Shown one piece after another: positions 13,624-64,000 of a stretch of DNA of 64,000 nucleotides (the first letter of the stretch is position 1; the number at the start of each line of letters is the position of its first letter). The translations under genes were made by a program, and so were the position numbers. The stretch is taken from positions 62,001 to 126,000 of IMG/VR virus record IMGVR_UViG_3300043399_000877; one strand, given 5' to 3'. The notes under the pieces were generated by a model. It ran no database searches. It had not been told where the DNA came from and was given only the letters and a program-made list of their open reading frames with translations.

Positions 13624-13626
13624 TTC

Positions 13627-38551: not shown

Positions 38552-41500
38552 ATGGCACAGGACGACGAAGTTAAGACGATCCACAACCGCCCGGCCGGCA
38601 ACTATAACGCTCGCTGGGATGCAATCGCCCGCAGCCGCGAGGCGCTGGATCAGCACGCCGACTTCTTCAGCGACCCCGAGCACCAGCGCCGCGTCGACGC
38701 CGTTCGCGCTGTCCTCGACGACTTCTTGCCGATCCGCAAGGAGCTCTACGTGAATCGGCGCGGGCTCAACACGAAGAAGCCGCGCACGGTGATCAAAGTG
38801 GAGTCGCCGCAGTTCCCCAACCACCTGCCGCGCAGCGAGCGTGAGGCTCGCTATCACAAGCCCCTGCGAGACCTGGGCGTTGAGATCAAGCTCAGCGTCA
38901 ACACCAACAGTTATTTGTATTCGATCGCATAAAAGTGCTTGACACTGGTGCCGGCGGCTGCTATGTTGCCGGCATACAGACAGAGGAGACAACGATGGCG
39001 ATGAAACAAAACAAGTTCACGACCCGCAAGTTCGACGGTGATAGCCAGGGATCCTGGGCTGTGTTCCGCAAGGCGGATGTGAAGGGCATCCGCGGCGTGG
39101 TGTTCTATGGGCAGGCCCGTCCGATTGTATGTGGGCTGACGAAGCGCGAGGCAGATTACTATCGCTCGCGCTGTGATGAAGGGCATTACCTCTAAAATAA
39201 GTGTTGACACGGGCCACGGCCCGTGTTACTACACTGACACAACGGCAAAACAAGGAGCAAATTACATGGACGAGCGTCAGAAGGCAGCGATGGAGTTCCT
39301 GGCCGAGGAACTCAGCCGCGAGCTGGAGTTCCAACAGTCAGACGAGTATCTGGGCGACGACATCGTGCCGTTGCTTCGCGAGATGCAGGAGCGCATCGAA
39401 CGCAACGACATTCCCACGCTGGCAGAGCTCGAGGCGTGGAGCCTGCGGGTGTATGATGTGACACGCGGCGACGCGATGTATGGCGACACTGACATGGCGG
39501 ACGGGCTCGTGGAGGGGCTGGCGGCGGCGCTGGAGTTGACTGAAGAAACTGCTTGACACTGACGCCCAGTCCTGCTATTGATGTGGGACTGGGCAACACA
39601 GGAGGCTGGCATGCGCTACTATCGAGTGAGAGCAGAGCACGTTCGGCAGCTGGCAATCGGGCTGGCTGCTGAGCAGATGGAGGAGATCCCGGGCGTGATC
39701 CTCATGGCGGCCGGGGCGGATGAGGTGTTCGATCGTCAGGCAATCTGGGTGCTGGCAAGCGAGCTGGCGCTGGGCAATCAGCTTCAGGACATCGTGTGGC
39801 GCTATAACGGCGGCAACTGGTGCGAGGTGGCTGAGATCGACGAGGAGACTGCTGAAGGCTTTTGTTGAAAAAAGTGGTTGACACTGGCTCTGGCTGATGC
39901 TATAACTGGAGCATGGAAACAACGGAGGCGACGATGACGCTGACAAGGGAACAGGTTGTGGCGCTGGTGACCCGGACCGATGCGGTGGCGATGCATGCCA
40001 TCGGCCGTGCGCTGGTGCACTTGTTGAACCGTCAGACGCGCGAGGAGAGCCGCGATAATGTGACGCGCAACCTCAACGACGTGGGCTTCACGCCCGCCGA
40101 TGCGCGCATGGGTTGCATCCACGCCAAATGCTACATCAAGCGCGGCGAGCTCGAGGAATGGCAGGTTCGCTACTGGCAGCGGCCCAACGCCAAAGGCGTA
40201 CCGCGTATCGCCAAGTATTGGCGACAGCTGGCCGAGGAAGCGGCGCGGAAAGCGGTTGCAAGGGCGGCCGCTTGATGCTATACTGGTCGGGCAACACGAG
40301 GAGACACCGATGGAACTAGATATCGCCGAGATCGTCGCCGCCCTGCAAGCTCACCTCCAGACGGCCACTGTGGTCAACGGCTGGCGCTATCCGGTCGAGC
40401 AGGTCATCTGCGCGGACGGCGCCCGCTTCAGCGTCCAGGCCAGCCGGTATACCTACTGCCAGCCGCGCAACGATGTCGGGCCCTGGACGCACGTCGAGGT
40501 GATGACCATCACCGATGGGGTCACGCCCAGCTGCTGGACTCACGACGCCGGGGACAATCTGGCCGGCTATGTGCCGATCGAAGCCGTTGCGAAAGAAATT
40601 TGGCTTCGTGGAAAAAAGCTCTTGACTGGCACTGACATTCCTGCTATCACGTGTGAGTAGGCAACAAGGAGCAACGACGATGAAAGTGACGCGCAAAAAT
40701 CCGTTCACCGGCCAGATGCTGACCCGTGAGATCCCCGTGACCGAGGAGCAACTGATGGCCTGGCAGGATGGGGAGCTGATCCAGAATGCCATGCCCAACA
40801 TCAGCGCGGAAGACCGCGAGTTCATCAAGAGCGGCATCACGGCCGAGCAATGGGAAGAAATGTTCGGCTGACGGCAAAATAACGGTTGACTCCCGGAAGG
40901 GAGTCAGCTATACCACTGACATGGAAAACAGGAGAGCAAGATGTTCGGATACAAGAAAGTCGGAACGGTCAAGACCTTCGAAGCCACGGTGCGGGCCGGG
41001 ATGGCGCTCACCAAAGTGACTGTCAATGCCGACAGCACCTATGCGGCGCGCAAGCAATTGGAGGGCATCTACGGTGCCAACAACGTCAAGAGTGTTCGCC
41101 AACTCTGAAGAAAGTGGTTGACTCCCGGAAGGGAGTCAGCTATACCACTGACATGGAAGCAAGGAGCAACGAGATGGACACTGGTTGGAGACTGGCCACC
41201 AAGGAAGAGATCCGGGAGATGCAGGATCTCCCTGGCGCGCCGCATGTGACTTTCGGCTGCACCTGCTGCGGCATGGTGAACTGGACTGCCAAGAACCTCG
41301 CGCTGAACAGCGACGGTCGCTACACCGGAGCTCGCAACATCTTCGTGAGCGACTGGACTCGCGGCGAGTGTGAGTGCCCCAGCACCCACCTGCGGGCCGT
41401 GGTGCGGGAAAAAGAATCCGTCCTGGCCTAAGAAAGTGGTTGACTCCCGGAAGGGAGTCAGCTATAACACTGACATGGAAGCAAGGAGCAACGAGATGAC

Positions 41501-43306
41501 CGACACTGTGAACCCGGAACTGAAGCCCGTCACCGAGATCCGTGACGAGATGCTGGCCGCGGCGCGTGATGCCGCCAACCGCAAGTTCGCCGAGATCGGC
41601 GGCGACCGCTACGCCTGCGGCTTTGCGTGGGTGACTGTTTACCCCAAACACAAGGGCAACACGCGGGCGGGCCGCGCCGAGCGCGAGACGCTGCGGGCGA
41701 TGGGCTTTGAGCTGGACTACACCGGCAAGGCGTTCCAGCTCTGGAACCCCAGCAACCACTCCTGTCAGAACGTGGACACCAAGGAGGCCGGCGCACAGGC
41801 TGCGGCTTCGGTGCTGCGCCGCTACGGGATCGAGGCCTGGGCGGGGTCGCGACTGGACTGAAAATAACTGTTGACACGGGCTCCATGCAGTGCTATAAGT
41901 GCTGCATGGAAACAACGGAGGCACGGATGCGCGCTTACGATCCCCGAGACGGTTACTTTACCTACAACCCCCAGACCCGGACCTTCAGCGCCGATGCCAG
42001 CGACCTCGCCTGGCCCGCGGGTTCGGCCTGCTATGAGTTCCAGCTCAAGAGCGAGCTCACCGGCACGTTCGTCAACATGGAGCGCATCGATCCCACGCGG
42101 AATGCCGAGGGCGAGATCCTGTGGTTCAACTACCGCAGCCGGTGCATCACCAGCGAAGATCCCACAGTGGATCTCCATCAGACCTATTATGCGAGGGTGT
42201 TCAACGACTGAAGAAAGTGGTTGACATCCAGGTCGGCATCCGCTAGGGTGCCGACATACAACGAGGAGCAGACGGATGGACGAGTTCATGACAGAGTTGG
42301 TGCCGGTTGCTGAGTGGGAATGGTGGTTGTGGCGCGTGACCTATAGGAGCGAATTCGGCGACAGTCAATCGTTTTTTGTGGTCAGCACCGAAGATCATCT
42401 GGACCTCGAAGTCGAGGACCGTTGGCCCAGCGATTGGTTCACCGAATACACATACGAGAAGATGTCGCGCTGTGGCGCTCCCCGGCAGCTCTGGTGTGCT
42501 GCTCGCAAGTGCCGGTATCCGGAATACGCCTGGGACGCTGGTGCCCGCGAGGCCGCTCGTCTCGGCTTCCAGATCACCGACCCGCAGCCGGAGATTTATG
42601 CCGAACTGGCATAAAAAACTGTTGACAGCTGGCAGACGGTCAGCTATACACATGACATGGAAGCAAAGAGGAGCAACAAGATGCGACCAGTGATTATGAA
42701 AGCCGGCACCTACTACATCGGTGACCTGTGCTATGTGCTGCACGACAGCTGGGATGAAGTTTGCAGCCTGATTATTCAGGGGCAGGCGGTGCTGGAGGGC
42801 CACTTCACCCTCAAAGACGGCCGCGAGTTCGCCATGTTCAACACCGCCTACGGCGATGGCACCTACACCGACAACCTGGGCGGGCGCTATCCGGTGGACG
42901 CCGGCAACATCGGCTGCATCTTGCTGGAGTCGGTGGACCGCTCGGATCAGGACGACGTCACGTTGGGCGTGACGCACACCTTCGATGCGGACTTTGTCTG
43001 CGACACCGACGGGCGCACCATCGAGTTCGGCAGTATCCGGATCCCAACCGCAGACGACGAGGACGACTGGGAAGATGACGACCTTTACGACGACTGGGAA
43101 GAAGATTTGTTCGACGAGCCCTGATTCTGCTTGACACTGTTGCCGGCAACTGTTATGTTGCCGGCACACAGGGAGGACGTGATGGACGAACAAGACGACT
43201 ACTTTTCCGAGACTACCGAAGGTCGCTGGACTGCCGGTTGGTGGATCGTGCCCAGTGTGATCCTGGGGGTAGTGATGCTGGTCGGACTCGGCTGGTGGAT
43301 AGCGTA
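38552..43306 (+). CDS. Fourteen monocistronic small hypothetical genes (38552-38932, 38995-39195, 39266-39556, 39611-39868, 39934-40275, 40309-40660, 40680-40871, 40941-41108, 41174-41431, 41496-41861, 41927-42211, 42276-42614, 42681-43124, ~43181-43306)
   Basis: Each is preceded by its own -35/-10 promoter and SD. Confidence 0.75.
40884..41498 (+). repeat. Three near-identical promoter/RBS cassettes (40884-40926, 41108-41176, 41430-41498)
   Basis: GGTTGACTCCCGGAAGGGAGTCAGCTATA(C/A)CACTGACATGGAA; copies 2 and 3 match at 68 of 69 nt. Confidence 0.95.
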
Positions 43307-43395
43307 AGCGACTTTCCGCTTACTCACCCAACTAACTGTTGACATACAGGCTGAGGCTGCTATAAGTAACATACAACGACAAAAGGAGAAAACCA

Positions 43396-44016
43396 ATGAA
43401 GATGCGAACCATCCTCGGCGGTGTTGCTTCCTCAGCCGTGATTGGTGCTATGGCAGTGATTTACATAACGGCGGGCGAAGAGGCATACGCCGCCATAGAC
43501 CCAACAGAACTGATGATCCCGAGCCCGACTTATGATAGCGAGCGAATGATCGCCCTAGAGCCCGAGCTCACCAGTTCTGTTGCAACAATCCGACCGAGGC
43601 CGCGACCCGTAGGACTGGAGCGTCTGCCAGAATCGGCGAACAACCAGGACGAACAATACTGCCTAGCGCAGAACATCTATTTCGAAGCACGAGGCGAGGG
43701 CAGAATTGGCCAGGAGGCCGTTGCATGGGTCACGCTCAATCGCGTAATGGACCCGCGCTGGCCGGACACGATCTGCCGGGTCGTGTGGCAGGATAACCAG
43801 TTTAGCTGGACACACGACGGGCGGGGCGACACGCCGCGCGCCGGTGACATGTGGGATCAGGCCCGGGCGATTGCTGCACGAGTGACCGCCGAATACAATC
43901 CGGATCTCGATCCCACCGAAGGCAGTGTAATGTTTCACGCTGACTATGTCAACCCCGAATGGGAAGACAACTTCGTTCGGGTAGTGCAGATTGATGCTCA
44001 CATTTTTTACAGATAG
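43396..44016 (+). CDS. SleB/Hydrolase_2 family cell wall hydrolase with N-terminal membrane anchor
   Basis: CLAQNIYFEARGE..VAWVTLNRV..WPDTICRVVWQ..QFSW..FHADYVNPEW..HIFY. Confidence 0.9.
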   Translation: MKMRTILGGVASSAVIGAMAVIYITAGEEAYAAIDPTELMIPSPTYDSERMIALEPELTSSVATIRPRPRPVGLERLPESANNQDEQYCLAQNIYFEARGEGRIGQEAVAWVTLNRVMDPRWPDTICRVVWQDNQFSWTHDGRGDTPRAGDMWDQARAIAARVTAEYNPDLDPTEGSVMFHADYVNPEWEDNFVRVVQIDAHIFYR

Positions 44017-44072
44017 TGATTGACACACACCTCCCGTCTTGTTATACGATACTGGCAAGACGGGAGATACAC

Positions 44073-45089
44073 AATGCGGCGCGAAACGATCCAGAATTTG
44101 TTGATTGCTGCCATCGAAGACGACGACGTCGAGACGGCCGAAGAGTGGCAGGCCATGCTGGACCTGATGGACGCGAACGGTTGGCTGGTGATAGAAGTTT
44201 GAAATAACTGTTGACACGGGCAGGACTGTCTGCTATAACACTGGCAACAAGGAGCAAACGATATGAAATACGCGATGATTTTGGCCACCCTGCTGCTGTC
44301 GGCTTGCGCGGACACTCCGCGACTCACCAGCCCGGCGGAGGCGCTGGCTGACCGTGCAGCACACGATGCCTACCTGGCCGGCAAGTATGATCCCGAACTC
44401 GTGGCTGACTGCGCCTACTATGATCTGGAGGAATGCTGATGAACATCGCACAAATGGTCCGTGACTTCAGCATCGCCATTCTGGCCATGCTGGTGGTGAT
44501 GTTGCTGCTGTGGGCCCGCTGGTACCCGGCGGAATACGGCCGCTGGCTGCAACAGATCGACACTGCCCGGTTCGAGATGCTGGACTGCGACTGCACCGAA
44601 CCGCTGGAGTAAGACCCCGCTGTTGGGTGTGGCACGGACCGACTGTTGGTGCCCCGCCCGCAAAGATCACGACGGCAGGCTGCGACAACGAAATAGAGCT
44701 TGACGCTGTGACACGGGACTGCTATAACACTGGCAACAGACACGGACACCACCGGACACTGACGGTGGACCGGAGCGGGCCGACACGGAGGACAGGACGT
44801 GAACCAGACAACTGAACAGAAAGATACGGCAGAGGCCGAGGCGGCGCAATACCGCTGGTTGACGGTGAGCGGAATACTCCGCACCGGCGGCGACTGGGTC
44901 ACTATCTTCGAGCAGCGGACTGACCGCCCGCTGACCCCGGAGGAAGTGACGGCTGCCCGAGGTGAACTGCGGCCGCTGCTGGAATCCGTCAGCGAAAGTT
45001 TTCGAGACGATCGGCAGGCGACGCTGACCTTCGACAGTGTTCGAGTTCATGTGCAGAGCTGGGCTGCGATCCGTATCGAATTGAGATAA
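44073..45089 (+). CDS. Small hypothetical genes including a small lipoprotein (LLLSAC) and 44799-45089
   Basis: Promoters at 44020, 44211 and 44700; SDs. Confidence 0.6.
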
Positions 45090-45473
45090 CATACCGGGAA
45101 CCGATCCCGATACAGAACCTCCGTCACTGCGGGTTTGCTCCCCCCGGGCGACGGAGTGTCGGTGCTGGTGGTGTGTTGCGTTGATTGTGTTGGGTGCGTT
45201 TGCTCCCGCGCCCCGCGCTGTCCGCCGCCACCAGCACCCATTTTTTTCAGTGCCAGCCGCGCCGTCTCCAGTCGCCACCGCCGCCGTCTCCAGTCGCGCC
45301 ATCAAACGCCACCAGTCATTCAACGCCATAGCACACAACATGCACACCAATACGGCAGTTTGTCAAGTAACGATTTGTTACAAAGCACGTTTCAAACTGT
45401 AACATTTTGTTACTTGACGTGCGCTGCACAGACTGCTATAAACAGCTTGTAAGCAACGCAGAGGAGCAACTGC

Positions 45474-45677
45474 ATGTATAACAGTTTTTACGTTGTTGTG
45501 CGTAACGCTGCAAACAAGCGCAGCGTTGTAGGGCAGGACTGTGGAACGCTTGAGTATGCAACGCTGATGGCGGTAGCAGAGCGCAAGCGCACGGGGCGTG
45601 AGGTGTGGGTGCGCGAATACGAGCAAGAGGGCGTGTTTGGCAAGCGCAAGCTGCTGAGGGAACATGCAGTAGCATAA
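45474..45677 (+). CDS. Small proline-free protein in the TC/CC-free island
   Basis: Promoter at 45414; GAGGAG SD. Confidence 0.75.
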   Translation: MYNSFYVVVRNAANKRSVVGQDCGTLEYATLMAVAERKRTGREVWVREYEQEGVFGKRKLLREHAVA

Positions 45678-45772
45678 CACAGAAAAAACGGCAATGCAAG
45701 CGCATTTTGTGCTTGCATTGTGCTGCGCATAGTGCTATAAACAGTTTGTAAGCAACGCAGAGGAGCAACGCA

Positions 45773-46060
45773 ATGCAATACGCTACTGTTTACAAACACA
45801 AAAACAACGCAATTTACAACGTAAACGCTGTTGTAAAATACAAATACGACGAGAGCGACGTGCTGCGTGTGCTTGTGCGCAAAGAGCGTGTGTATGTTGT
45901 GTGCTGCGGGGAGCTGGGGGAAATTACAAGCAAGTGTGCAAACTTGCTGCGCGTGTTTGCAAAAGTGCTTGCTGCACTTGGGCTGCACAACTGCAAACAG
46001 TTGCATACGGGCAACTACGGGACAAAAGACGGGGGAACGTTTGTAGTTTTTGCACGTTAA
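45773..46060 (+). CDS. Small proline-free protein in the TC/CC-free island
   Basis: TTGCAT-N17-TATAAA promoter; GAGGAG SD. Confidence 0.75.
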   Translation: MQYATVYKHKNNAIYNVNAVVKYKYDESDVLRVLVRKERVYVVCCGELGEITSKCANLLRVFAKVLAALGLHNCKQLHTGNYGTKDGGTFVVFAR

Positions 46061-46148
46061 AAAAAATGCAGTGCAAGTGCATTTTGTGCTTGCACTGCGT
46101 CGCATAAACTGCTATACACGACTTGTAAGCAAATAGAGGAGCAACTAA

Positions 46149-46352
46149 ATGCTTAACATGCGTAAACGTATTGCTGCTGCACATGCGCGCTATGCGCAAA
46201 AACAAGAGCAAAGCGCACAATTGCGCGCTGCAATTGCAACAGGGGGCAGCTATGCGCTGTGGCGTGCTGCAATTGCAGAGGAGGACGCTGCAAAGCAACG
46301 GCTGCAACGGCTGTATGCTGAGGCAGGCTATGCTGACGCGGTTGTAGACTAA
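46149..46352 (+). CDS. Small proline-free helical protein in the TC/CC-free island
   Basis: TTGCAC-N17-TATACA promoter; GAGGAG SD. Confidence 0.75.
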   Translation: MLNMRKRIAAAHARYAQKQEQSAQLRAAIATGGSYALWRAAIAEEDAAKQRLQRLYAEAGYADAVVD

Positions 46353-46457
46353 CACAAAAACAAATGCAGTGCAAGCGCATTTTGTGCTTGCACTGTGTTG
46401 TGCAGTGTGCTATAAGTAAGTGACCGGGGGCAGACCCCGCTGCCCAGGAGAGACCGG

Positions 46458-46838
46458 ATGACCAGAATTCGCCGCACCAGCCACACCAACGGTGGCACAC
46501 GACACACAACCACCCTCACCAGCACGGGCAGGCTGACGCAGAGCACCAGCCAGCGCACCGGCACCGGGCGCATCACACACACTGTGGACAACGAAGGTCG
46601 CAGCTATACAACCCGCACAACCCGTTTCGCTGACGGCAGTTGGGAACGGGAACGCCTGGGTGCGAAGACCCCGGTGCAGAACGGGCGCAGAAACACCCGG
46701 GGTCTCCAGGGTGTGTCCCGGGACTGGACTGCGCCGGAGCGGACGGGTGGGCCCAGCGACACAGCCTTGCAGGTGCTGGGTTGGATTGGCATCGTATTTG
46801 TGGTGCTGTGGGTGCTGGGACTGCTGCTGGGTGCTTAG
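46458..46838 (+). CDS. Thr/Arg-rich protein with a C-terminal transmembrane helix
   Basis: Promoter at 46388; AGGAG SD; hydrophobic C-terminus. Confidence 0.65.
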   Translation: MTRIRRTSHTNGGTRHTTTLTSTGRLTQSTSQRTGTGRITHTVDNEGRSYTTRTTRFADGSWERERLGAKTPVQNGRRNTRGLQGVSRDWTAPERTGGPSDTALQVLGWIGIVFVVLWVLGLLLGA

Positions 46839-46905
46839 GGAAAGACCCCGGTGCTGCCCACCAGTGAGAGAAGAACAGGACAGAACAGACACGGCAGATA
46901 GGCGG

Positions 46906-46932
46906 AGGGGGCGCACTGACAGTGCGCCCCCT
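46906..46932. terminator. GC-rich hairpin between convergent genes
   Basis: AGGGGGCGCACTG-A-CAGTGCGCCCCCT. Confidence 0.7.
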
Positions 46933-46939
46933 GGTGTTG

Positions 46940-47248
46940 TTACGCGGGTTGTTGCACGTCCCCGGGCCAATCCTCCGTATACAGCACACCGCCGATCGTC
47001 ACCGTGGCAGTGTCCTCGAACAGCACCTCGTACAAGTCCTCGTCCGCGCCCTCGCCGTAAATTTCCCTGTGCCGCTCCGCCACAAGCGCCCGCAGCTCGG
47101 GGTTGCTGAGCAGTATGTCGAGGAACGCTGTGTGTGCGTACCACTGCATCTCGCTCACCGTGCCGTCCTCCACGGGCCGGGCGAGTTGCTGCCACAGCTC
47201 GTTGCGCCGGATGAAGTTCAGCAAGTCTCTGTATGTAACAATCTGCAT
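46940..47248 (-). CDS. Acidic hypothetical protein
   Basis: GGGAG SD; downstream of 47264..47512. Confidence 0.7.
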   Translation of the reverse strand: MQIVTYRDLLNFIRRNELWQQLARPVEDGTVSEMQWYAHTAFLDILLSNPELRALVAERHREIYGEGADEDLYEVLFEDTATVTIGGVLYTEDWPGDVQQPA

Positions 47249-47263
47249 GTCTGCTCCCGTGTG

Positions 47264-47512
47264 TTAGCGATTTGCTTGCAGTGCTGCCTGCAGGTGCTCT
47301 TGCATGGTTGCACTGTCCTCGTCGTTCAGTGCTGCCATGTATAGCCTGTCATAGCCGCGACGCTCGTACTCCGCCGCGTTGTCGGTCAGCAAGCTGTCTG
47401 CGTCCAGCGCCTGCAACAAGTTTTCAGCCAGCGCCGCCGCCAGCTGGTGCGCTTGCAATAGCGCCTGCGCAGCGCGCACGATTGCACTGTGGTGGTCATT
47501 TGTGGTCTGCAT
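47264..47512 (-). CDS. Small proline-free helical protein
   Basis: AGGAG SD; two tandem minus-strand promoters (-35 near 47599 and 47699). Confidence 0.75.
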   Translation of the reverse strand: MQTTNDHHSAIVRAAQALLQAHQLAAALAENLLQALDADSLLTDNAAEYERRGYDRLYMAALNDEDSATMQEHLQAALQANR

Positions 47513-48136
47513 GTTTGCTCCTGCAGTTGTTACGTTACACGCACAACACGCACTAGCTACTTACACAACACTTATAGCACACAGCACTAGCTAATGCAAG
47601 TAACAAATTGTTACAGTGTGTTACAACTGCTACTAGCTACTGCGTTACTGCTTACTTGCTACAGTTACGTTTATAGCACAGCGCGCACACGGGCGTCAAG
47701 CAAAAAATGCGCGACTTTATTGCGTTGTTGTGTGTGCTGGCGCAATTTTATTACTGTTGCATGCGTGCAACGTGCGTGCGTTTTTTTATTTTTTTGCTTG
47801 ACAGGCTGGGGTGGCGTGTATATAATAACAAATTTTTTTCTGCGACGCGTTGCGACGAGCCAAATCCTTTTTCGCAAATCTTTTTCTTCTTCTTTCTTCT
47901 TCTTTTTTAAAACCGTTAAAACCCCCAAGTACCCTGGGGGAAACCCGTACCCTGAATCCCTAAGTACTTGTATAAAAAAAATTGCGCGAGCTGATCAGCG
48001 CAGCGCAGGAGCCCCCGGGGGCTCCGAAACCACCGGGCCAGATCTGTAAGTACTTGCTAAAAAATTTTCGCCGTCAGAATTTTTTATCCTGCAGAAGCCC
48101 GTTGACAAACCCCCGCCCATAGTGTATACAGCTGGC

Positions 48137-48919
48137 ATGAGTAGGTTACAAACACATCACAGTTGGAACATTCGTGTACGGGCGTCAGCGCCCATCGGCA
48201 CCGGCTGGGCAGTTTTCCGGATGCTCAACAGTCTACGAGACCGTGGATTCACCTGGGAACATCAACCGTTGAACTCCAGCACTCGTGTCATAGTACGACA
48301 CCGTGCCGGCAGTGCCGGCACCTTGCTGCGTCTCAGTGTTCCCGACAGCATCGCACAGTACATCACCATAGAGGACTCACCCACATGCACACTTGGCTAG
48401 TAAGAATCACCGGTGCACCGGTCAGCCGCAGTCAGGGTTGGCAGGTGCGAGCCAGTTTCCGTCAGGCTGGATTTACCATCCGTGAACATTTCGATGATCG
48501 TTTGGGCATGAGTCCGGCACGATGGTTCTGGGCCGATCACAGTAACGAAAGTGCCATCACACTCTGGTTGCTCCAGAGATTACCAGTGTTGGAGGGCACG
48601 GTGCTGGACCCACGTCAAACGGTTAGCCTGGAGGAGATCGAACTTGGATAAACTGTATCGATCGATTTCGGTATCCCCCCAGGAACGTCTGGCACTGCGT
48701 GAACTGTTCAGTCGTTTGGGTCTGGATCCTATATTCACCACGGCCAGTGGCCGTACTGTGGTGCTGGCTAGCGAACGTCAGTTTACGTACATCAGCCTCG
48801 GGCTCAGTACTGTACGGGTTCACGATCTCGATGCTTATGAACAGTCTCGGCTAGACTATTATCTGGCACGGGCTGCGCGTCGTGAGTCCTGGCGGGCTTT
48901 GTATAATGTACAGCTATAA
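48137..48919 (+). CDS. Three small hypothetical proteins of the same divergent family as 7778-10469
   Basis: Promoter at 48102; motifs SAGTLLRLS, NESAITLWLL and SERQFTYISL. Confidence 0.6.
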
Positions 48920-48974
48920 TTTCTAAAAATCTTTTCTACCGCACCGCTTCGCGGCTTCGGGGCCCGTTGCCCCG

Positions 48975-50384
48975 TCAGCCGGTTCCGAGATTGTTTAGGA
49001 ACTGTCGCAGTCTGCTGCCGTCTACTTCAGCTGCGGGGGCCGCCTGCGGTTTTGCACTGTTGGTGGGACCGCTGTTGTTGCCGGTGCGTCGTAGGTTGTT
49101 CATAACCTGGCTGGGAGTCTGATCGGACTCGGCTTCGCTTCCCTGTTCGGCATCGGTGATCCTCAGTGTGTCCACGTCAAATTCCAGATCGATCTTGCTG
49201 CCCACACCCGAACTCGAACGTGTTTTCATCAGCTGTATCTGATATCTGCCGCGTTCTCGCATCGCACGACTGGTAAAGATACCGATCACGTTGTCGGCTG
49301 TCTGGATCTTACTCAAACCACCCGAGATATGACTGTGGTCAAACTCGATCTCTTCCACCGCTGATCGGTTCAGCTGGCTGGCTGTAACAGTAATAGTATT
49401 GAGTTCCATTGCAAGGTCTCTCAATTCTTCACTCACATACTTGTCTTTGACGAACAGGTTCTCGGCGCTGACCTTCACACGCATGGGCATCATAAGATCC
49501 AGATAATCTATCAGCAGTACGTCGATTTTTCTGCCTGTCTTGATCTCGTATTCTTTTACATAGCTGCGTAGGTCATTCGCGTTCTTGCCCGATGGCATGT
49601 ATTTGACCTGGAAGCTACCCGAGTTGCGTCCGATCATTCGAACCTTGAGTTCTACGTCGTCGATGTTCTTAAAAATGTCACGCGTCGTAATTCCGGTAAC
49701 CATACTGTCAATACGCATACTCACTAGGTTTTCACTAAGTTCGAATGTCAGGTACAGTACGTTCAAACCCATCAGCGCCCAGTTGACTCCGAGGTTTGCT
49801 AGGAACAGGCTCTTGCCGGCACCGCTACCGCCGGCAAATATGTTGAGTTCGCCGCGGTTAAATCCGCCAAACAGTCGACTGTCCAGTGCCTGCCAGCCGG
49901 TGCTTACCTGCCCGTTGCGGCTCTTGATGGCTTCTAGACGCTCACGAGGGTTGGCAAAGTAGTCGGTGCCCAGGTCCTTTTGTAGGCCTATCTGCACAGC
50001 ACGTTTAACCAGATCTTCAACCGGACCGTATTCACCCTTCTCCAACAGGTCAGCACTTTTCAAGATTGCTGCTTCCAGTGCTTTGTGTCTCGCAAAGGTC
50101 TCAAACTCGTCCATCAGCCAATCGTAGTGCGCATCCACCATGTCTCCGGGATGCCGTAGATCCACGTGAGCGGCTGCGTTGACCATTTCAAACGTGGGCA
50201 TTGTGTTATACTGATTTACATACTTGAGAATGAATTCGGCTGCGGGCTGTAGGCGGCGCTCAAAGCTGTGAGGGTCGAACACACTCTGACAGCGCACAAA
50301 TGTCTGTGCATCAGTCAGCATAATCTCCAGATAGACCTTCTGGATATCATATCCGTAATCGACGTTTTGTTTTGCCTTGCTCAT
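48975..50384 (-). CDS. DnaB-like replicative helicase (T4 gp41-like)
   Basis: GGSGAGKS, LIDYLDLM, TASQLNRS, QLMKTRSS. Confidence 0.92.
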   Translation of the reverse strand: MSKAKQNVDYGYDIQKVYLEIMLTDAQTFVRCQSVFDPHSFERRLQPAAEFILKYVNQYNTMPTFEMVNAAAHVDLRHPGDMVDAHYDWLMDEFETFARHKALEAAILKSADLLEKGEYGPVEDLVKRAVQIGLQKDLGTDYFANPRERLEAIKSRNGQVSTGWQALDSRLFGGFNRGELNIFAGGSGAGKSLFLANLGVNWALMGLNVLYLTFELSENLVSMRIDSMVTGITTRDIFKNIDDVELKVRMIGRNSGSFQVKYMPSGKNANDLRSYVKEYEIKTGRKIDVLLIDYLDLMMPMRVKVSAENLFVKDKYVSEELRDLAMELNTITVTASQLNRSAVEEIEFDHSHISGGLSKIQTADNVIGIFTSRAMRERGRYQIQLMKTRSSSGVGSKIDLEFDVDTLRITDAEQGSEAESDQTPSQVMNNLRRTGNNSGPTNSAKPQAAPAAEVDGSRLRQFLNNLGTG

Positions 50385-51364
50385 CTTTCGTACCACCGTT
50401 TCATTCTTAATCTTATTTTTAATGCCGAACTCTCGGCAGCCTGTAATATTGAATACAGTGTATATAGTCGGCCGTATCTTTTAACAGCATCTCCTGGATC
50501 TTTTATGTCCGGGTCCCAATCCGGCATGCTAACCATCCAGCCCTGGTCTATTGCTGGTTCGATTAGTTTCTGTCCCGCGGGATCACGGTCCGGTACCACT
50601 ATCACAGTTTTTCTATACTGATTTATCAACAATGCCTGCTGCTCACTAAACTCACTACCTAAAAATGCACTGGCGCCGATCGGCAGTGCGTCTATGGGTC
50701 CTTCGGTAAGGATCATGTATTCTCTGTCATCCGATTGGCGATCCAAATTAAAAACATAGCCGGGCTGCTGTTCTGAAAGATACTTTGGTGTACCCGTGTC
50801 CGTGTGTCGTGAAGTCCAACCCACGGTTTGTCCGCGATACTTGAAAGGTATTATCAGTCGATCGCGATATGCAACGCTGTTGTTCCAGTAAAAATCTCCA
50901 TCTTCAAAATACAGAGAACGAGCTTGCATGTAGCGCAGGACACGCTCAAGGTGTTGATTTACCGGACCGGAGTAGGTGTTTAAATGCACCGTATTTTCCG
51001 GAAGTGGCATACTAACAAAGTTTGGAAGTTCTATCGATCGTTGTTTTACTACAACGCCTTCGTTTAACTTCATAACATTCAATGCTAGCTGAGTTATTTC
51101 AGAATCCGGAACCGACAACCATCCCAACAACTTTTTAAACTTGGGCGCGAGCTGACGGCCCGGTTGCCAGCTTGCCTTAAACCCACAATTAAAGCAATGA
51201 TAGGTTACAATATCGCCGTTTTCTAAGACGCCACCGCGCTGGCGCTTGTCGGGATTCTGTCCGTTATGCTGGCAACAGACAGCGTTGAAGCTAACCCACC
51301 CGCTGGGCGTAGTTTTCCTCTTAACGGGCAAATGTTTTATCAACAGCTCAGATACTATGCTCAT
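50381..51364 (-). CDS. DNA primase (Zn ribbon + TOPRIM)
   Basis: CC..YHCFNCG, RLIIPF, LTEGPIDA, VPDRDPAG, KDPGD. Confidence 0.9.
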   Translation of the reverse strand: MSIVSELLIKHLPVKRKTTPSGWVSFNAVCCQHNGQNPDKRQRGGVLENGDIVTYHCFNCGFKASWQPGRQLAPKFKKLLGWLSVPDSEITQLALNVMKLNEGVVVKQRSIELPNFVSMPLPENTVHLNTYSGPVNQHLERVLRYMQARSLYFEDGDFYWNNSVAYRDRLIIPFKYRGQTVGWTSRHTDTGTPKYLSEQQPGYVFNLDRQSDDREYMILTEGPIDALPIGASAFLGSEFSEQQALLINQYRKTVIVVPDRDPAGQKLIEPAIDQGWMVSMPDWDPDIKDPGDAVKRYGRLYTLYSILQAAESSALKIRLRMKRWYER

Positions 51365-51399
51365 AGTTTAATATAGCATAATTCTATGAAAAAGTCAAA

Positions 51400-52170
51400 T
51401 TAGTTTCGTATTACAACTCGTCTTATCAAATTTTCAGGATCAGTACTTGTTCTGATTCTTAAGTTTTGATAAACGCCGTTGAAGTTTACACACACCGGCG
51501 CAGTGTCCGATGGTGATACTGCGACTGTTGCCACAGTAAACCAGTTGAGACCTATAGAACTTTCTAAGGTTGCTTCTATAACCACATCGCCGGAGTATCC
51601 GTTGTTGTACACCACCGCAGTATAACTTCCGCCGGGATTGGTGTTTAATGCTGATGTGGCATTCACAGTAGCATACCAGTTTTGATTTATTTTGTAAAAG
51701 TTATCAAACACTAGATTTTCTTTAGTGTCCGGGTAACTCTGACCGTCTACATAAATAATTCCAGAGCTAGTAAAATCAGTATTTGTATATGTAATATTTC
51801 TTTTTCCAGTATTGTCTAAGATATATACATTATACTTTAAATATTGTTGTGGAATATCAAGGAGATCAGTATCTGTAATAGTAACTGTAAAATTGCCCAA
51901 GGTAGCACGGGTGGAGCCGTCGTCAATAACTTCACAGGGTTTTTCAATAATACGCCGTTGCTGATCATCAAATGCAACAAAATACGGAGTTCCGGTTATT
52001 GGAACAGCCTTTTGATCAGCGTTAAGCAATCTAAAATATATCAAATTGTCAATTCCACGAGTTATGCGAATATTTCTTTGAAACACGGGTCTATACTCCA
52101 CTCCGAGACCGGCATGGTTGGAAATAATGTCAACTTGATTTTTTACTAAATATCTAGGTGTTAATTGCAT
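51400..52170 (-). CDS. Hypothetical beta-rich late protein
   Basis: 256-aa ORF with TATAAATA just upstream. Confidence 0.7.
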   Translation of the reverse strand: MQLTPRYLVKNQVDIISNHAGLGVEYRPVFQRNIRITRGIDNLIYFRLLNADQKAVPITGTPYFVAFDDQQRRIIEKPCEVIDDGSTRATLGNFTVTITDTDLLDIPQQYLKYNVYILDNTGKRNITYTNTDFTSSGIIYVDGQSYPDTKENLVFDNFYKINQNWYATVNATSALNTNPGGSYTAVVYNNGYSGDVVIEATLESSIGLNWFTVATVAVSPSDTAPVCVNFNGVYQNLRIRTSTDPENLIRRVVIRN

Positions 52171-52200
52171 GCCATACTCTTTTAAGTATTTATATAGAAA

Positions 52201-52572
52201 ATGTTATTGAAGGATATAGAAGAAAACTTTCCATTTATAAGCGTAGTAGCTTACGGTGGTAACGAATATGTTGGTATAATAAGTAACCAGGATCAGTATG
52301 TTACCTGTATGTATGTCTACGAGATTTTGAAATCACAAGAACACAAACAGTTATTATTAAGTTTAGGAAATATATGGTGGTGGGAATCAAATAGAATGAT
52401 TCCCATTAATATTTTTTTAAGGAAAGAAATAGAACCACTAAAGTATGCGTTAATGAGTATGAACAGTAAAGATGTGCGCATATGTATAGGGCCAACTGTA
52501 AACTTAAACAATCTTGCGCTCAAGCGAATCAAAAAAAAAAGTGTACAGTTGGTAATAAAAAAGAATGACTAA
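52201..52572 (+). CDS. Hypothetical protein
   Basis: 123-aa ORF filling the gap; WWWESNRMIPINIFL motif. Confidence 0.7.
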   Translation: MLLKDIEENFPFISVVAYGGNEYVGIISNQDQYVTCMYVYEILKSQEHKQLLLSLGNIWWWESNRMIPINIFLRKEIEPLKYALMSMNSKDVRICIGPTVNLNNLALKRIKKKSVQLVIKKND

Positions 52573-53126
52573 CCAGCGTACGATTCACAAATAAGATTCA
52601 TATGAACTATAACAGCGTGTGCATAAGATATGGCATGCGACTTTTTAAAATAATAATCGTCACCCACAGGTTTAACCCATATCTCTCTCATAACAGTGTC
52701 CCAGTCTTTCCCAATTAGGTGACGTTTTGCCGGACGTATCATAGCCAAAACTGCTGCAAGTTGCTCTACACTTTTGGGACGCATCTGCTTTAATATATCG
52801 CTGTGTCCATTTATGTGAAAAACCTGATCCACAAATTCAGCATGTTCCAATAACTCCCATATCGGTTCACGTTCCACTAATTCTTGCAAATGCTGATTAT
52901 CTTTTACATCGCGGTATATGCTTACGTTGAGGCAGTCCACTTTAAAATAACCCAGTTGCTCAGCATCTTTGTAATTTATATTAGACAGATTGGTTATGGG
53001 ATTATACGGAATTTCTGAAAAGTAAACCCCGGTCAAGTGGGGTTTACCGTTTTCCAATGCGGCTGTGCGATGTTTAAGTAAGTTTAATAATCTTGATCTG
53101 TCCGGAAAGTCAATATCAATGTCCAT
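52569..53126 (-). CDS. Miniature DNA polymerase III alpha (DnaE)-like protein
   Basis: DIDIDF, HLTGVY, YFKVDCLN, LAMIRP and FKKSHAISYA motifs in DnaE order within only 185 aa. Confidence 0.8.
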   Translation of the reverse strand: MDIDIDFPDRSRLLNLLKHRTAALENGKPHLTGVYFSEIPYNPITNLSNINYKDAEQLGYFKVDCLNVSIYRDVKDNQHLQELVEREPIWELLEHAEFVDQVFHINGHSDILKQMRPKSVEQLAAVLAMIRPAKRHLIGKDWDTVMREIWVKPVGDDYYFKKSHAISYAHAVIVHMNLICESYAG

Positions 53127-53878
53127 TATAGACCTGCCTGTTTTACTACCTGTTTTACCAGTTCCATGTCCGCTGGGTGTTTTTTAAACTTTATACTCCA
53201 CTTTTGCGGATCCATTACCTTGTACACCATAGTCAATTGCTCGTCACTCAATTGCTGTAACATGTTTTTTCCGGTCTCGCAGTTTAGTATAAGCCATGGA
53301 CTTATTTTCCCATCGCGAATATGCCATACTGCTCGATTATGATTTACATATCTAAAATAATGATTCCAAACACTGCCGTTCTCCTCCGCCCACTCAGTCA
53401 TGGTTGTAATAGAACGTTCTAATGCTGTCTCTAAATCTTCTTTAAAAATAAGTTCAAGAACATATCGCTCATAAAGATCATCATTACTCCACTTGTCAAT
53501 CTTTTCACCACTCCTTACAATCCAGTCAATGTACTTGTCAGGATACAGTGGCCTAACATTGCTCATAAAACTTCCGAATTTAACAAATGCATTGTAAAAT
53601 TGGCTTTTGCAAAATTCGTCATACGTCTTGATTCCGCGATAGTTTGCACTGAGTTGATAAAATCTCACAAAAGTTTGATAGCCAAATTGTACACGCTTTT
53701 CATTCTTTTGCAAGTGTCTGCGCTTTTGTTCACATATGTGAACTTGCAACGTGTTTTCTTTTGCAAAACTTTTGCTGCAATATTCACAAGTAAACGGCAA
53801 TTTTTTTACCTTAGCTGAGGACTGGGTTGTGGATTTCTTCGAGTTGTTTAAGTTCTTCTTTTGTAAGTATTCCAGCAA
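53126..53878 (-). CDS. Hypothetical protein with N-terminal Zn finger (start uncertain)
   Basis: FTCEYCSKSFAKENTLQVHIC. Confidence 0.7.
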   Translation of the reverse strand: MLEYLQKKNLNNSKKSTTQSSAKVKKLPFTCEYCSKSFAKENTLQVHICEQKRRHLQKNEKRVQFGYQTFVRFYQLSANYRGIKTYDEFCKSQFYNAFVKFGSFMSNVRPLYPDKYIDWIVRSGEKIDKWSNDDLYERYVLELIFKEDLETALERSITTMTEWAEENGSVWNHYFRYVNHNRAVWHIRDGKISPWLILNCETGKNMLQQLSDEQLTMVYKVMDPQKWSIKFKKHPADMELVKQVVKQAGL

Positions 53879-54281
53879 GTAACTCTACCTCATCTCGTTT
53901 CATATTTGGATAAATGCCTTCCAAAAACTTGACAGTCTTACTGGCTGCCCGTTTGGTACCAATCCACTCGTGCCGTTCTTTTTTGCCAGTGTTGCCGCAC
54001 ATACACAACAATAGCCATTGTAACTTGGGATGCTTTGACCCCAAAACTGCCCAATTCTTATTGTAGTATTCGTTAGTTTTAATTACCGCAAGCGCAACGT
54101 CATCAACTGAATATTTTGAGTATTTGCTATCCGCCAAAGCACTCATGTATCTATTTAAATTCCACATGTCGGCTTTGATTTCTTTTTGGCCTTCTTCTCC
54201 AGCCACGTCCCACAAATCTCGCATGCCCAGGTCCAGAGCTGGGATCATCTCTTTGAATAAGTCTATATGTTTATTTGCCAT
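53811..54281 (-). CDS. Clamp-loader small subunit-like protein (T4 gp62-like)
   Basis: LNRYMS..NEYYN..HPKLQWLLL..HEWI..FLEGIYP..LTKEELKQL pattern; replication context. Confidence 0.5.
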   Translation of the reverse strand: MANKHIDLFKEMIPALDLGMRDLWDVAGEEGQKEIKADMWNLNRYMSALADSKYSKYSVDDVALAVIKTNEYYNKNWAVLGSKHPKLQWLLLCMCGNTGKKERHEWIGTKRAASKTVKFLEGIYPNMKRDEVELLAGILTKEELKQLEEIHNPVLS

Positions 54282-55445: not shown

Positions 55446-55455
55446 TTAAACCCTC

Positions 55456-58689: not shown

Positions 58690-58706
58690 ATGTCTACACT
58701 AACATG

Positions 58707-63677: not shown

Positions 63678-63802
63678 TTAAATTTTTCCTTTATAGGTTT
63701 AATGTAATTATTTAGATCTGTTTTGTAGATTTAAAAAAGCGGCTGTTCCTAATTATACAACATTTTTTGCTCCTATGCAATCTTTATTTGATAAATATTT
63801 TT

Positions 63803-64000
63803 ATGAAAAGAATAGCCGTAATTTGCGCATACCCTAAACACAACCCCGGAATGTATAGTGTGGATCTGGGTTTGGGTAGCATCGTTAATACTTTAGAAAA
63901 AGTTAAAGTTACAAGATTTAACATACAAGATAATTATTCTATAAAATCTGATTTATACAAATTAAAATACAATTTGTTATATGATGCGGCTCAATTAGAA
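63803..64000 (+). CDS. Partial CDS, possibly a polysaccharide-modifying enzyme
   Basis: MKRIAVICAYPKHNPGMYSVDLG..., open to the window end; GATAAATA at 63790-63797. Confidence 0.55.
   Translation, partial: MKRIAVICAYPKHNPGMYSVDLGLGSIVNTLEKVKVTRFNIQDNYSIKSDLYKLKYNLLYDAAQLE

Follow-up and report, generated by a model that had tools for sequence, protein, structure and literature searches.

Putative early genes with almost no TC or CC on the coding strand in an uncultured freshwater jumbo phage and its relatives

Organization of the locus

The DNA analyzed here, which we refer to as the window, is a stretch of 64,000 nucleotides (positions 62,001 to 126,000 of IMG/VR record IMGVR_UViG_3300043399_000877) from an uncultured phage with a 382-kb genome. 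Within it, a cluster from 45193 to 47839 contains two converging transcription units of small genes, several of which are written with almost no TC or CC (together, YC, where Y = T or C) on the coding strand. An earlier note, made from the sequence alone, had placed this feature at 45394-47800; with our revised limits, two genes inside the cluster (46458-46838 and 46940-47248) are not purged. The features are collected in Table 1.

Table 1. Features of the cluster (window coordinates; YC, TC or CC; GR, GA or GG; SD, Shine-Dalgarno).
Position	Strand	Feature	Composition and remarks
45193..45354	-	Left flank; either a leftward YC-free transcript or a Rho-loading (rut-like) tract for plus-strand read-through	Minus strand YC-free (1 against 13 expected); plus strand a C-rich tract with almost no GA/GG (C 71, G 33, 37 YC, 1 GR)
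45367..45413	.	Two copies of the palindrome GTAAC-N5-GTTAC (45367-45381 and 45399-45413) between back-to-back -35 boxes; operator-like	Only 3 copies in 64 kb (0.03 expected)
45414..45440	+	Promoter P1 (TTGACG-N14-TGCTATA)	Followed by a conserved 5'UTR and the SD sequence GAGGAG
45474..45677	+	Island gene 1 (67 aa, P0001)	0 YC, no Pro, no known family
45692..45739	+	Intergenic hairpin (45692-45720), overlapping promoter P2 (TTGCAT-N14-TGCTATA, 45713-45739)	With the A-run before it, the hairpin forms a terminator for the antisense direction
45773..46060	+	Island gene 2 (95 aa, P0002)	0 YC; most conserved island gene, with homologues P0005-P0007
46067..46116	+	Hairpin 2 (46067-46099) and promoter P3 (TTGCAC, 46090-46116)	Holds the island's only TC, at 46100
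46149..46352	+	Island gene 3 (67 aa, P0003)	0 YC
46365..46414	+	Hairpin 3 (46365-46395) and promoter P4 (TTGCAC, 46388-46414)	Both strands clean, although P4's own transcript is not
46458..46838	+	Gene 4 (126 aa, hydrophobic C-terminus), last gene of the plus unit	Not purged (39 YC)
46906..46932	.	GC-rich hairpin between the converging units, likely a terminator for both directions	12-bp stem
46940..47248	-	Last gene of the minus unit (102 aa)	Not purged (22 sense YC against 36 expected; contains Pro)
47264..47512	-	Gene P0004 (82 aa, helical, acidic)	Partly purged (10 sense YC against 31 expected); no Pro
47513..47700	-	Untranslated leader with two minus-strand promoters (47573-47599 TTGCAT; 47672-47699 TTGACG) and a third GTAAC-N5-GTTAC palindrome (47600-47614)	0 sense YC against 11 expected; 47520-47691 has no TC, CC, GA or GG
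47758..47795	+	Intrinsic terminator (hairpin followed by a T-run)	At the right edge of the clean zone
47798..47826	+	Perfect sigma-70 consensus promoter (TTGACA-17-TATAAT)	A contig from an RNA library ends in adapter sequence at about 47807
47855..47935	+	Untranslated CU-rich, G-poor tract downstream of that promoter	G 5, C 24, 18 YC in 81 nt; compositional opposite of the island; conserved

The island promoters belong to a class of about 20 sites of the form TTGNNN-N14-TGCTATA in the window, with a -35 box and an extended -10 at 17-bp spacing followed by a short leader, a ribosome-binding site and a start codon, as in the sigma-70-type early promoters of T4-like phages; their strength is inferred from sequence. 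The extended -10 is TGC in 17 of 18 cases and never TGA or TGG. Four -35 boxes in the cluster read TTGCA(T/C), whereas 14 other promoters of the same class read TTGACA/G. None of the six cluster proteins matched a known family in Pfam, PHROGs or PADLOC.

Extent of the purge

The compositional observation in the earlier note held, and proved stronger than reported. In 45394-46423 (1030 nt) there is 1 TC (46 expected) and no CC (42 expected), or 1 YC against about 89 expected, while GA is 39 against 85, GG 50 against 85, and GC 135 against 60. The four longest YC-free gaps in the 64 kb (708, 324, 176 and 143 nt) all lie at 45392-46424 or 47520-47839, and the next longest anywhere is 112 nt; the eight longest stretches free of TC, CC, GA and GG together (171 to 60 nt) also lie in the cluster. 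We also confirmed the absence of all four dinucleotides from 47522-47691, the absence of proline from the four proteins, the TTGCA(T/C) boxes, and the lack of GA/GG in the first 55-75 nt of each CDS, which we could generalize to 14 island genes. The note's proposed flip of the bias with gene orientation is only partial, as the sense-strand counts for the minus unit (Table 1) rise from the leader to the last gene.

The rule is not explained by chance or codon usage. Shuffling codon order gave 22.4 YC at codon junctions (minimum 11 in 2000 shuffles), against 0 observed, and every NTC and NCC trinucleotide is missing, including ACC (0 against 12 expected) and CCC (0 against 8.6). Relatives 76-88% identical in DNA, differing by 51-106 substitutions over 442 nt, carry 0-7 YC, against 11.5-22.7 expected from random substitution (P <= 2e-4), implying that the purge is kept by selection.

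The trait is not confined to this phage. Counts are 0-1 YC per 0.9-1.0 kb in the window and in one other sequence with such an island (L084), and 3-4 per 1.3-1.6 kb in two more (L082 and L083), and more distant jumbo-phage lineages (L004, L005 and L007) have their own YC-free early genes. The samples were from freshwater, estuary, wastewater and seawater. In seven islands from four or more lineages, only TC and CC are missing from the coding strand; CT and TT are at or above expectation, and GA/GG are normal in L004 and L005. In L004 the coding strand is YC-free but rich in GA/GG right up to the promoter. The shared rule is thus the absence of 5'-YC-3' from the coding strand, and a second tier, in which both strands are clean from about -80 to +80 around each start site, exists only in some lineages. 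In the second tier, GA/GG are lost from the coding strand from -105 to +55 around the start codon, with the ribosome-binding site as the one tolerated GA/GG cluster. One gene in L007 (17987-18285) shows the reverse pattern, with a coding strand free of GA/GG and rich in YC.

A possible escape from Rho

We interpret the cluster as a set of immediate-early gene cassettes, each comprising a hairpin, a strong sigma-70 promoter, a short leader with a GAGGAG ribosome-binding site, and a small gene of unknown family, in which the coding strand, and therefore the RNA, has been purged by selection of UC and CC. This looks like escape from a host factor that reads exactly those two dinucleotides, and we tentatively favor the transcription terminator Rho, which the earlier note did not consider. 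Rho's primary binding site has six clefts, each taking one YC dinucleotide (PMC5314796), and E. coli Rho recognizes up to six CC or UC dinucleotides (PMC13323073). In this view, an RNA with none would offer Rho no handle, whether or not ribosomes are following the polymerase, so that the first phage transcripts and their long untranslated leaders could be completed in the first moments of infection, the period when Rho limits early transcription in T4-type phages. Our analysis directly establishes the purge, its strand rule, its maintenance by selection, its dependence on position in the transcription unit and the promoter architecture, but that Rho is the reader of YC, that it fails to load on these RNAs, and that these genes are immediate-early are inferences.

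Several features agree with this model in addition to the match in specificity. The rule follows the transcribed strand and includes untranslated leaders and intergenic spacers, and the island RNA has more G than C (C 209, G 296, C/G = 0.7), the opposite of a rut site. In both converging units the promoter-proximal parts are purged and the last gene before the terminator is not, in a gradient resembling polarity; because the unpurged terminal gene of the minus unit is homologous to purged island genes of L082 and L086 (another sequence with such an island), position in the unit, not protein family, decides. The island also sits beside its compositional opposites, the C-rich tract at 45193-45354 and the CU tract at 47855-47935, the latter having the second-highest YC-minus-G score on the plus strand of the window and being expanded by tandem repeats to about 106 G-free nt in L082, which suggests that Rho signals are being used on purpose here. 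The range of lineages and habitats fits a universal host factor better than a strain-specific defence. In T4, adding Rho restricts in vitro transcription to immediate-early RNA, and certain rho alleles block growth (PMC2988021). Finally, contigs from an RNA library (run X17) cover 45161-47807 but not the flanks, whereas a DNA run (X3) whose listed variants largely match those of X17 does cover those flanks.

Other features fit Rho poorly. Rho needs several spaced YC within about 80 nt, so a handful per kb should be harmless, yet counts are 0-4 per 0.9-1.6 kb and the proteins go without proline and UCN serine, implying strong selection on every site, more like avoidance of a cutting or targeting motif. 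Rho provides no reason for the loss of GA/GG around the start codon, for the change of -35 boxes from TTGACA to TTGCAN, for depletion in the untranscribed stretch between the back-to-back promoters, or for a 465-nt non-coding stretch clean on both strands in L083. The second tier may have a separate cause, such as keeping the ribosome-binding site unique, antisense transcripts that end at the antisense-facing hairpin terminators, or DNA-level targeting. In addition, the strong ribosome-binding sites of the island genes should already afford protection through translation, and fourteen other early units with the same promoter class show no purge beyond +50. A structure prediction for a Rho-P0002 complex gave no answer, and the case for Rho rests on sequence alone.

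If the Rho reading is right, this would be the first case of a virus escaping transcription termination through the spelling of its transcripts alone, a natural and extreme test of the rule that Rho needs YC, and a design rule for Rho-proof genes and leaders; if a rival is right, the islands point to an unknown defence or weapon with dinucleotide specificity. In either case, scanning for strand-specific YC-free stretches is a simple, alignment-free way to find the first-acting, probably host-takeover or anti-defence, genes in uncultured jumbo phages, and the occurrence of one protein family in purged and unpurged versions gives ready-made constructs for experiments.

Alternative explanations

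The features that Rho leaves unexplained are better accommodated by a cassette without PAMs (the short motifs CRISPR complexes need beside a target), although we consider this explanation unlikely overall. In this view the island would hold anti-CRISPR-like counter-defence genes that must be expressed even while an RNA-guided DNA-binding complex (Cascade, Cas12m-type or Cas9-type) is patrolling, with PAMs removed wherever a bound complex would stop RNA polymerase: on both strands around the promoter and on one strand inside genes. 5'-YC is the PAM class of several type I subtypes: I-F uses CC, I-C uses TTC, and I-A/I-B use YCN. The two-tier geometry is what CRISPR interference studies report, since Cascade on either strand of a promoter gave about 200-fold repression while inside the transcribed region only one strand works, apart from the vicinity of the polymerase footprint (PMC4288209), and a strand bias inside the ORF was also reported in PMC4288158, although the two papers disagree on which strand blocks. 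Cas12m defends against phages by binding DNA as a roadblock and uses T- and C-rich PAMs (PMC11013384). The clean zone of about +/-80 nt is roughly a polymerase footprint plus one protospacer on each side, and if each PAM is a separate hazard, the near-zero counts, the TTGCAN boxes and the depletion between the back-to-back promoters would be explained. However, L004 and L007 lack a both-strand clean promoter zone; purging 0.4% of a 382-kb genome does not stop cleavage elsewhere, requiring extra assumptions about a race between binding and anti-CRISPR expression; the loss of all NTC, not only TTC, requires a two-letter PAM or several systems; and PAMs differ between hosts, yet the same dinucleotides are purged in diverged lineages. 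Somewhat less likely still is escape from an unknown enzyme, encoded by the host (defence) or the phage (host shut-off), that acts at every 5'-YC-3' on an exposed single strand: an endoribonuclease or RNA-modifying enzyme acting on mRNA, or a cytosine deaminase, nuclease or ADP-ribosyltransferase acting on the non-template strand of heavily transcribed genes. The near-absolute purge and its cost to the proteins fit a hazard at each site, the strand rule fits RNA or the exposed non-template strand, and underwound DNA around very active promoters could expose both strands, which would account for the two-tier pattern. Enzymes with dinucleotide-scale specificity on single strands exist: DarT2 uses TNTC on ssDNA (PMC11543638). 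CmdT acts at GA in RNA, APOBEC-type deaminases at TC/CC, and T4 endonuclease IV 5' of dC in ssDNA. Nevertheless, no known bacterial or phage enzyme has YC specificity of this kind, and a literature search for anti-phage ssDNA cytosine deaminases found none. There is no deamination footprint, as CT (55 against 46) and TT (60 against 50) are only about 1.2 times expectation and T, at 22%, is not enriched. Gene 4 lies behind the same promoters and is not purged, an isolated CCC codon has been kept in two lineages, and a strain-specific defence is an unlikely cause of the same purge in several lineages and habitats. A broader version of these ideas, less likely than the Rho reading but still possible, is that aquatic bacteria, or these phages themselves, have an undescribed activity (a nuclease, deaminase, ADP-ribosyltransferase or RNA-guided binder) that strikes every 5'-YC-3' on an exposed single strand or on target DNA, the island then being counter-defence genes written in a reduced alphabet of 14 dinucleotides so as to be immune to it. 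Such cassettes would then mark both new anti-defence genes and the specificity of the defence they disarm.

The interpretation in the earlier note was only partly supported. Its general description, genes written to avoid something that reads a dinucleotide, is a fair one, since these are small genes behind strong sigma-70-type promoters of the phage's early class and the purge acts on nucleotides, follows the strand and is maintained by selection; its alternative, escape from a sequence-specific host defence, also remains possible. Its specific proposal, that virion DNA carries a modified base such as a 7-deazaguanine at GA/GG (or at TC/CC) and that the island is kept free of the motif on the template strand, and on both strands at promoters, so that unaided host RNA polymerase can transcribe it first, found no support, and we regard it as improbable. 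One cause would cover the template-strand rule, the clean promoters, the TTGCAN boxes and the TGC preference of the extended -10, and phage DpdA enzymes with GA or GA/GGC motifs are real (PMC7544227; PMC10484667). The window encodes a GT8 glycosyltransferase and a sugar-nucleotide enzyme next to the replication genes, and L082 has a carbamoyltransferase beside the helicase, which could belong to a DNA hypermodification pathway. However, a Pfam scan of about 40 ORFs of the window, which leaves out the other ~318 kb of the genome, found no DpdA/TGT, QueC/D/E, FolE, methyltransferase, TET or hydroxymethylase. The purge is broader than the GA/GGC of phage CAjan, the precedent cited in the note, because every GG on the template strand is avoided, not only GGC. 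CAjan itself, whose GA sites are almost all modified, has no motif-free gene islands: its longest GR-free run is 98 nt, YC-free 112 nt, and GA|GGC-free 134 nt. Host polymerase evidently copes there, and known hypermodified phages are transcribed by host polymerase. Furthermore, fourteen other early promoters in the window keep the consensus TTGACA and GG/CC-rich spacers, L004 has GA/GG throughout its promoter and leader, and the genes at 46458-46838 and 46940-47248 lie behind the clean promoters but are not purged. Least likely is translation tuning alone, in which UC and CC would be removed so that nothing in the mRNA can pair with the GAGGAG ribosome-binding site, and GA and GG near the start so that the site is unique. 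Every three-base complement of GAGGAG does contain UC or CC, and the site is unpaired in predicted folds, but an isolated dinucleotide can neither sequester nor mimic a ribosome-binding site, so the purge is far more than this needs. The purge also covers whole transcripts, long non-coding stretches and untranscribed promoter DNA, folding energies are ordinary (z = -0.8 and -1.45), and other early genes with equally strong sites are not purged.

Comparison with known systems

The phenomenon appears to be undescribed, although related effects are known. Rho avoidance already explains the purine bias of coding strands in bacteria with runaway transcription (PMC13323073, 2026), a cis-encoded effect that likewise follows the strand; there, however, it is a genome-wide statistical bias of a few per cent, whereas here two dinucleotides are almost totally removed from 0.4-1.6 kb cassettes in a phage, at the cost of proline and UCN serine codons, with a second both-strand tier at promoters. 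Early phage transcription from host sigma-70 promoters also runs into Rho in the limitation of T4 delayed-early transcription and in the lambda N and Q and P4 Psu systems (PMC2988021, PMC12360218), but those countermeasures are proteins or RNA elements acting on polymerase or on Rho, whereas the one proposed here would be the sequence of the transcript itself. The dPreQ0 modifications at GA/GGC in CAjan and at GA in phage iggy share a dinucleotide-scale motif containing G followed by a purine, and differ in the respects given above.

Anti-CRISPR loci with Aca repressors are similar in having small genes of unknown family behind very strong early promoters with inverted-repeat operator-like sites, here at the outer promoters, but we detected no Aca-type HTH gene and no known anti-CRISPR family in the cluster, and any anti-defence activity is hypothetical. 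Selective removal of a short word to escape a host reader is also seen for restriction sites, CRISPR PAMs, and CpG in RNA viruses that escape ZAP (PMC10191365), but here it is limited to a few genes and depends on strand and on position in the unit. Restriction-site avoidance, which would deplete palindromic sites equally on both strands, does not fit, as the purge is strand-asymmetric and palindromic sites are not avoided: TGCA is 30 against 3.8 expected and GCGC 18 against 3.5.

Strand-specific loss of TC and CC

The window, part of the 381,886-bp IMG/VR contig IMGVR_UViG_3300043399_000877, comes from an uncultured jumbo phage, and neither the window nor the island DNA has a near match among the cultured phages searched. 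A 13-kb locus of that contig is identical, base for base, to positions 40252-53243 of the window, which is therefore assigned to it. Its DnaB-type helicase is 51-53% identical to those of Pseudomonas phage PA5oct and Agrobacterium phage Atu_ph07, the best matches, but PA5oct has a different gene order around its helicase and no island within 20 kb on either side. Near-identical or related DNA is present in freshwater, estuary, wastewater and seawater runs. From 13 to 47 kb the plus strand carries small genes behind about 17 promoters of one class, TTGACA-N14-TGCTATAA.

The observation made in the earlier note, that a group of genes here is almost free of TC and CC on the coding strand, holds. 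Positions 45394-46423 contain 1 TC and 0 CC, against 46 and 42 expected, and the four longest gaps free of YC (Y = T or C) in the 64 kb, of 708, 324, 176 and 143 nt, all lie at 45392-46424 or 47520-47839, whereas the next longest is 112 nt. Positions 47520-47691 lack TC, CC, GA and GG altogether. The smaller claims of the note also check out: the four proteins (P0001 to P0004) contain no proline, four -35 boxes read TTGCA(T/C), and the first 55-75 nt of each coding sequence are free of GA/GG. Its suggestion that the bias flips with gene orientation is only partly borne out.

The purge acts on nucleotides and is selected. Serine is coded only by AGY, no codon ends in TC or CC, and there are no T|C or C|C codon junctions, where shuffling codon order gives 22.4 (minimum 11 in 2000 shuffles). 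All eight NTC and NCC trinucleotides are missing (88 expected, 1 seen), and leaders and intergenic spacers obey the rule too, which together with the junction counts rules out codon usage or amino-acid composition alone. Restriction-site avoidance can also be rejected, because the purge is strand-asymmetric and palindromes are enriched rather than avoided: TGCA occurs 30 times against 3.8 expected and GCGC 18 times against 3.5. GC is the commonest dinucleotide in 45394-46423 (135 against 60), and these enrichments may be a side-effect of the reduced alphabet. Mutational C-to-T erosion is rejected as well, since CT and TT are only about 1.2 times expectation and there is no deamination footprint. 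Unusual mRNA structure was not seen in predicted folds, and a search for known RNA families in 44500-49000 gave only sub-threshold matches.

Organization of the cluster

Table. Coordinates of features in the window and in related contigs (L-numbers)
Feature	Sequence	Position	Strand
Start of the plus unit, promoter P1	window	45414	+
Likely hairpin terminator ending both units	window	46906-46932	
Last gene of the minus unit	window	46940-47248	-
Start region of the minus unit	window	47573-47699, or perhaps near 47807	-
GTAAC-N5-GTTAC palindromes	window	45367-45381, 45399-45413, 47600-47614	
GTAAC-N5-GTTAC palindromes	L082	9459-9505, 12413-12529	
C-rich tract	window	45193-45354	+
C-rich tract	L082	11749-11924	+
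Terminator	window	47758-47795	+
Consensus promoter and CU-rich tract	window	47798-47935 (tract 47855-47935)	
Consensus promoter and CU-rich tract	L082	12712-12880	
Consensus promoter and CU-rich tract	L083	6182-6310	
YC-free island	L004	20845-21431	
YC-free island	L005	18732-19160	
YC-free island	L007	16801-17120	
Gene with the reverse pattern	L007	17987-18285	-
Stretch clean on both strands	L083	5590-6057	
Stretch clean on both strands	L084	2199-2747	
Called gene of 111 aa	L084	2260-2595	
DnaB-type helicase gene	window	48975-50396	-
GT8 glycosyltransferase and cytidylyltransferase/mannose-6-phosphate-isomerase-like protein; carbamoyltransferase in L082	window; L082	61232-63677; 16623-18116	
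tRNA genes (Met, Leu, Arg), CCA-adding enzyme, homing-endonuclease-like genes	window	13375-13749, 16693-17922, 14728-15339, 27217-27906, 54271-54918	

The plus unit runs from P1 through gene 1, a hairpin plus P2, gene 2, a hairpin plus P3, gene 3, a hairpin plus P4 and gene 4 to a hairpin terminator. Each intergenic module consists of an A-run, a hairpin of about 16 bp whose 3' arm holds the -35 box, an extended -10, a conserved leader and GAGGAG. Read on the minus strand, hairpin plus U-run is a canonical terminator, so the modules block antisense transcription; antisense promoters at the downstream edge of the clean zones were sought by eye, and none was convincing. The converging minus unit has a leader of at least 150 nt clean on both strands, followed by the gene for P0004 and a last gene, and ends at the same terminator. 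Purging is total in genes 1-3 and in the leader, partial in the P0004 gene (10 YC against 31 expected), and absent from the last gene of each unit.

The palindrome occurs only three times in the 64 kb, against 0.03 expected. All three copies sit beside -35 boxes at the outer edges of the cluster, and L082, the contig of a relative, has four at equivalent places. It looks like the operator of a dedicated regulator that brackets the whole cassette array.

The island is flanked by compositional extremes of the opposite kind. The C-rich tracts have almost no GA/GG (C/G about 2, 23-28 YC per 100 nt) and are built from repeats such as GCCGTCTCCAGTC; one sits just upstream of the island in the window and, in L082, one sits just before the terminator. 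They may be Rho-dependent terminators acting as insulators. On the other side, a perfect consensus promoter (TTGACA-17-TATAAT) drives an untranslated, conserved, CU-rich and nearly G-free tract, which varies in length through tandem repeats: in L082 the unit TTCATTCTTCTTCT is repeated about five times and the tract is expanded to 106 nt without a single G. It could be a very strong Rho-loading site, a Rho decoy, an anti-SD-like RNA or a triplex-forming DNA element. Conserved structured sequence follows up to about 48100 in the window, with no Rfam match.

Relatives

P0002, the product of island gene 2, has three homologues at 82-95% identity. Their contigs (L082-L086) share the gene order, and all have YC-free islands of up to 883 nt as well as stretches clean on both strands of 280-465 nt. 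Across the P0002 locus the DNA is 76-88% identical, yet it holds 0-7 YC where random substitution gives 11.5-22.7. Gene order differs between strains, which suggests that cassettes are shuffled through the shared promoter module. Because stretches clean on both strands cannot contain TGA on either strand, long spurious ORFs appear there, and gene callers will mis-annotate these regions: a 111-aa gene was called in L084, although no SD sequence is possible in such a stretch.

More distant phages, with helicases 72-73% identical (contigs L004, L005 and L007), have their own islands encoding unrelated small proteins, although most other helicase loci show no island within 10 kb. In all seven islands only TC and CC are missing from the coding strand, and in L004 that strand is rich in GA/GG right up to the promoter. 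L007 also contains a reverse case, a gene for a 94-aa basic protein whose coding strand has no GA or GG (no Gly, Asp or Glu) and is rich in YC; this is borderline significant (p about 1e-6) and may simply reflect amino-acid composition.

The unpurged last gene of the minus unit (22 YC, contains Pro) provides a natural experiment, as it is homologous to purged island genes of L082 (E = 2e-9) and L086 (E = 3e-14). Position in the transcription unit decides the spelling, not the protein family.

No function could be assigned to the island proteins by homology: searches of PHROGs, Pfam, PADLOC and the ESM Atlas gave no hit, and tblastn of P0001 (the product of island gene 1) or the L005 island protein against cultured phages found no homologue. 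The AlphaFold2 model of P0002 was too weak (pLDDT 60) to search with.

A clean zone on both strands around the promoters

Averaged over 14 island genes, coding-strand GA/GG is close to zero from -105 to +55 relative to the start codon, except in the ribosome-binding site, a span that corresponds to about -80 to +80 around the start of transcription. Part of this follows automatically, because the two arms of a hairpin stem are reverse complements and a stem inside a YC-free strand must therefore also be free of GA/GG. The rest is not automatic, including TTGCAN in place of TTGACA and the N-terminal 20 codons without Gly, Asp or Glu. This second tier is present in the window's subclade and in L005, and absent in L004 and L007.

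Expression

In an RNA-seq library from wastewater (run X17), contigs of a close relative cover 45161-47807 at word depths of 70-115, whereas nothing maps to 44000-45160 or 47841-49000. A DNA run (X3), whose listed variant letters largely match those of X17, does cover those flanks. This points to abundant RNA from the whole converging cluster, although the evidence is at the level of contigs, is not strand-specific, and extends to the unpurged genes as well. One X17 contig ends in adapter sequence at about 47807, which fits a transcript end there: either a leftward start from the symmetric TATATA -10 of the consensus promoter, or the 3' end of a plus-strand RNA at the neighboring terminator.

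Candidate readers of YC

The earlier note proposed that virion DNA is modified at G-purine (or pyrimidine-C) sites and that these genes are kept modification-free so that unaided host RNA polymerase can transcribe them first. The precedent it drew on is right, in that phage CAjan is modified at GA/GGC, and phage iggy is modified at GA, but we found no support for the mechanism inferred in the note. No modification genes are present among about 40 ORFs of the 64 kb examined of the 382-kb contig, the purge is broader than the CAjan motif, CAjan itself has no motif-free islands, fourteen sister promoters keep TTGACA, and L004 contradicts the both-strand rule. A GT8 glycosyltransferase and a sugar-nucleotide enzyme (the cytidylyltransferase/mannose-6-phosphate-isomerase-like protein) next to the replication genes and, beside the L082 helicase, a carbamoyltransferase leave hypermodification possible but unshown; they are candidates for glycosylation or carbamoylation of DNA or of virion proteins.

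The one well-established reader of exactly UC and CC on a nascent strand is the primary binding site of Rho (PMC5314796; PMC12360218). Avoidance of Rho already explains purine-rich coding strands in bacteria (PMC13323073), and Rho limits T4 early transcription (PMC2988021). Here Rho would account for the exact pair of dinucleotides, the strand rule, the inclusion of untranslated leaders, the polarity-like gradient and the wide distribution, and it also fits the neighboring C-rich and CU-rich tracts. It does not account for the both-strand tier, for the purge in the untranscribed DNA between the back-to-back promoters, or for counts that are near zero rather than merely low. A tethered-Rho pathway, in which each emerging YC is a separate chance of capture, would soften this last objection, but that is our inference. 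A structure prediction for a Rho-P0002 complex gave no answer and is not evidence either way.

The best rival for the features that Rho leaves unexplained is loss of PAMs. Cascade represses from either strand at a promoter but from only one strand inside a gene, binding-only Cas12m defends against phages and uses T/C-rich PAMs, and the cluster resembles an anti-CRISPR locus in form; however, this rival needs more assumptions and fails for L004 and L007. An unknown YC-specific enzyme acting on RNA or single-stranded DNA cannot be excluded, although the DarT motifs (TNTC for DarT2, no consensus for DarT1) do not explain the loss of CC. The analysis shows that the purge is real, conserved and selected, and as far as our literature searches show it is undescribed, whereas its purpose is inferred: our preferred but tentative reading is evasion of a reader of 5'-YC on the coding strand, most likely Rho. 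The two-tier geometry remains the main unexplained fact.

Other features of the window

The early-gene region (13000-47000) is 55-66% G+C, while the replication module of the same phage to its right (51000-64000) is 31-42%, an unusually large compositional split within one genome. The window also carries three tRNA genes, a CCA-adding enzyme with an HD domain and three homing-endonuclease-like genes (two HNH, one GIY-YIG), of which the GIY-YIG gene is AT-rich and lies on the opposite strand within the GC-rich early region.
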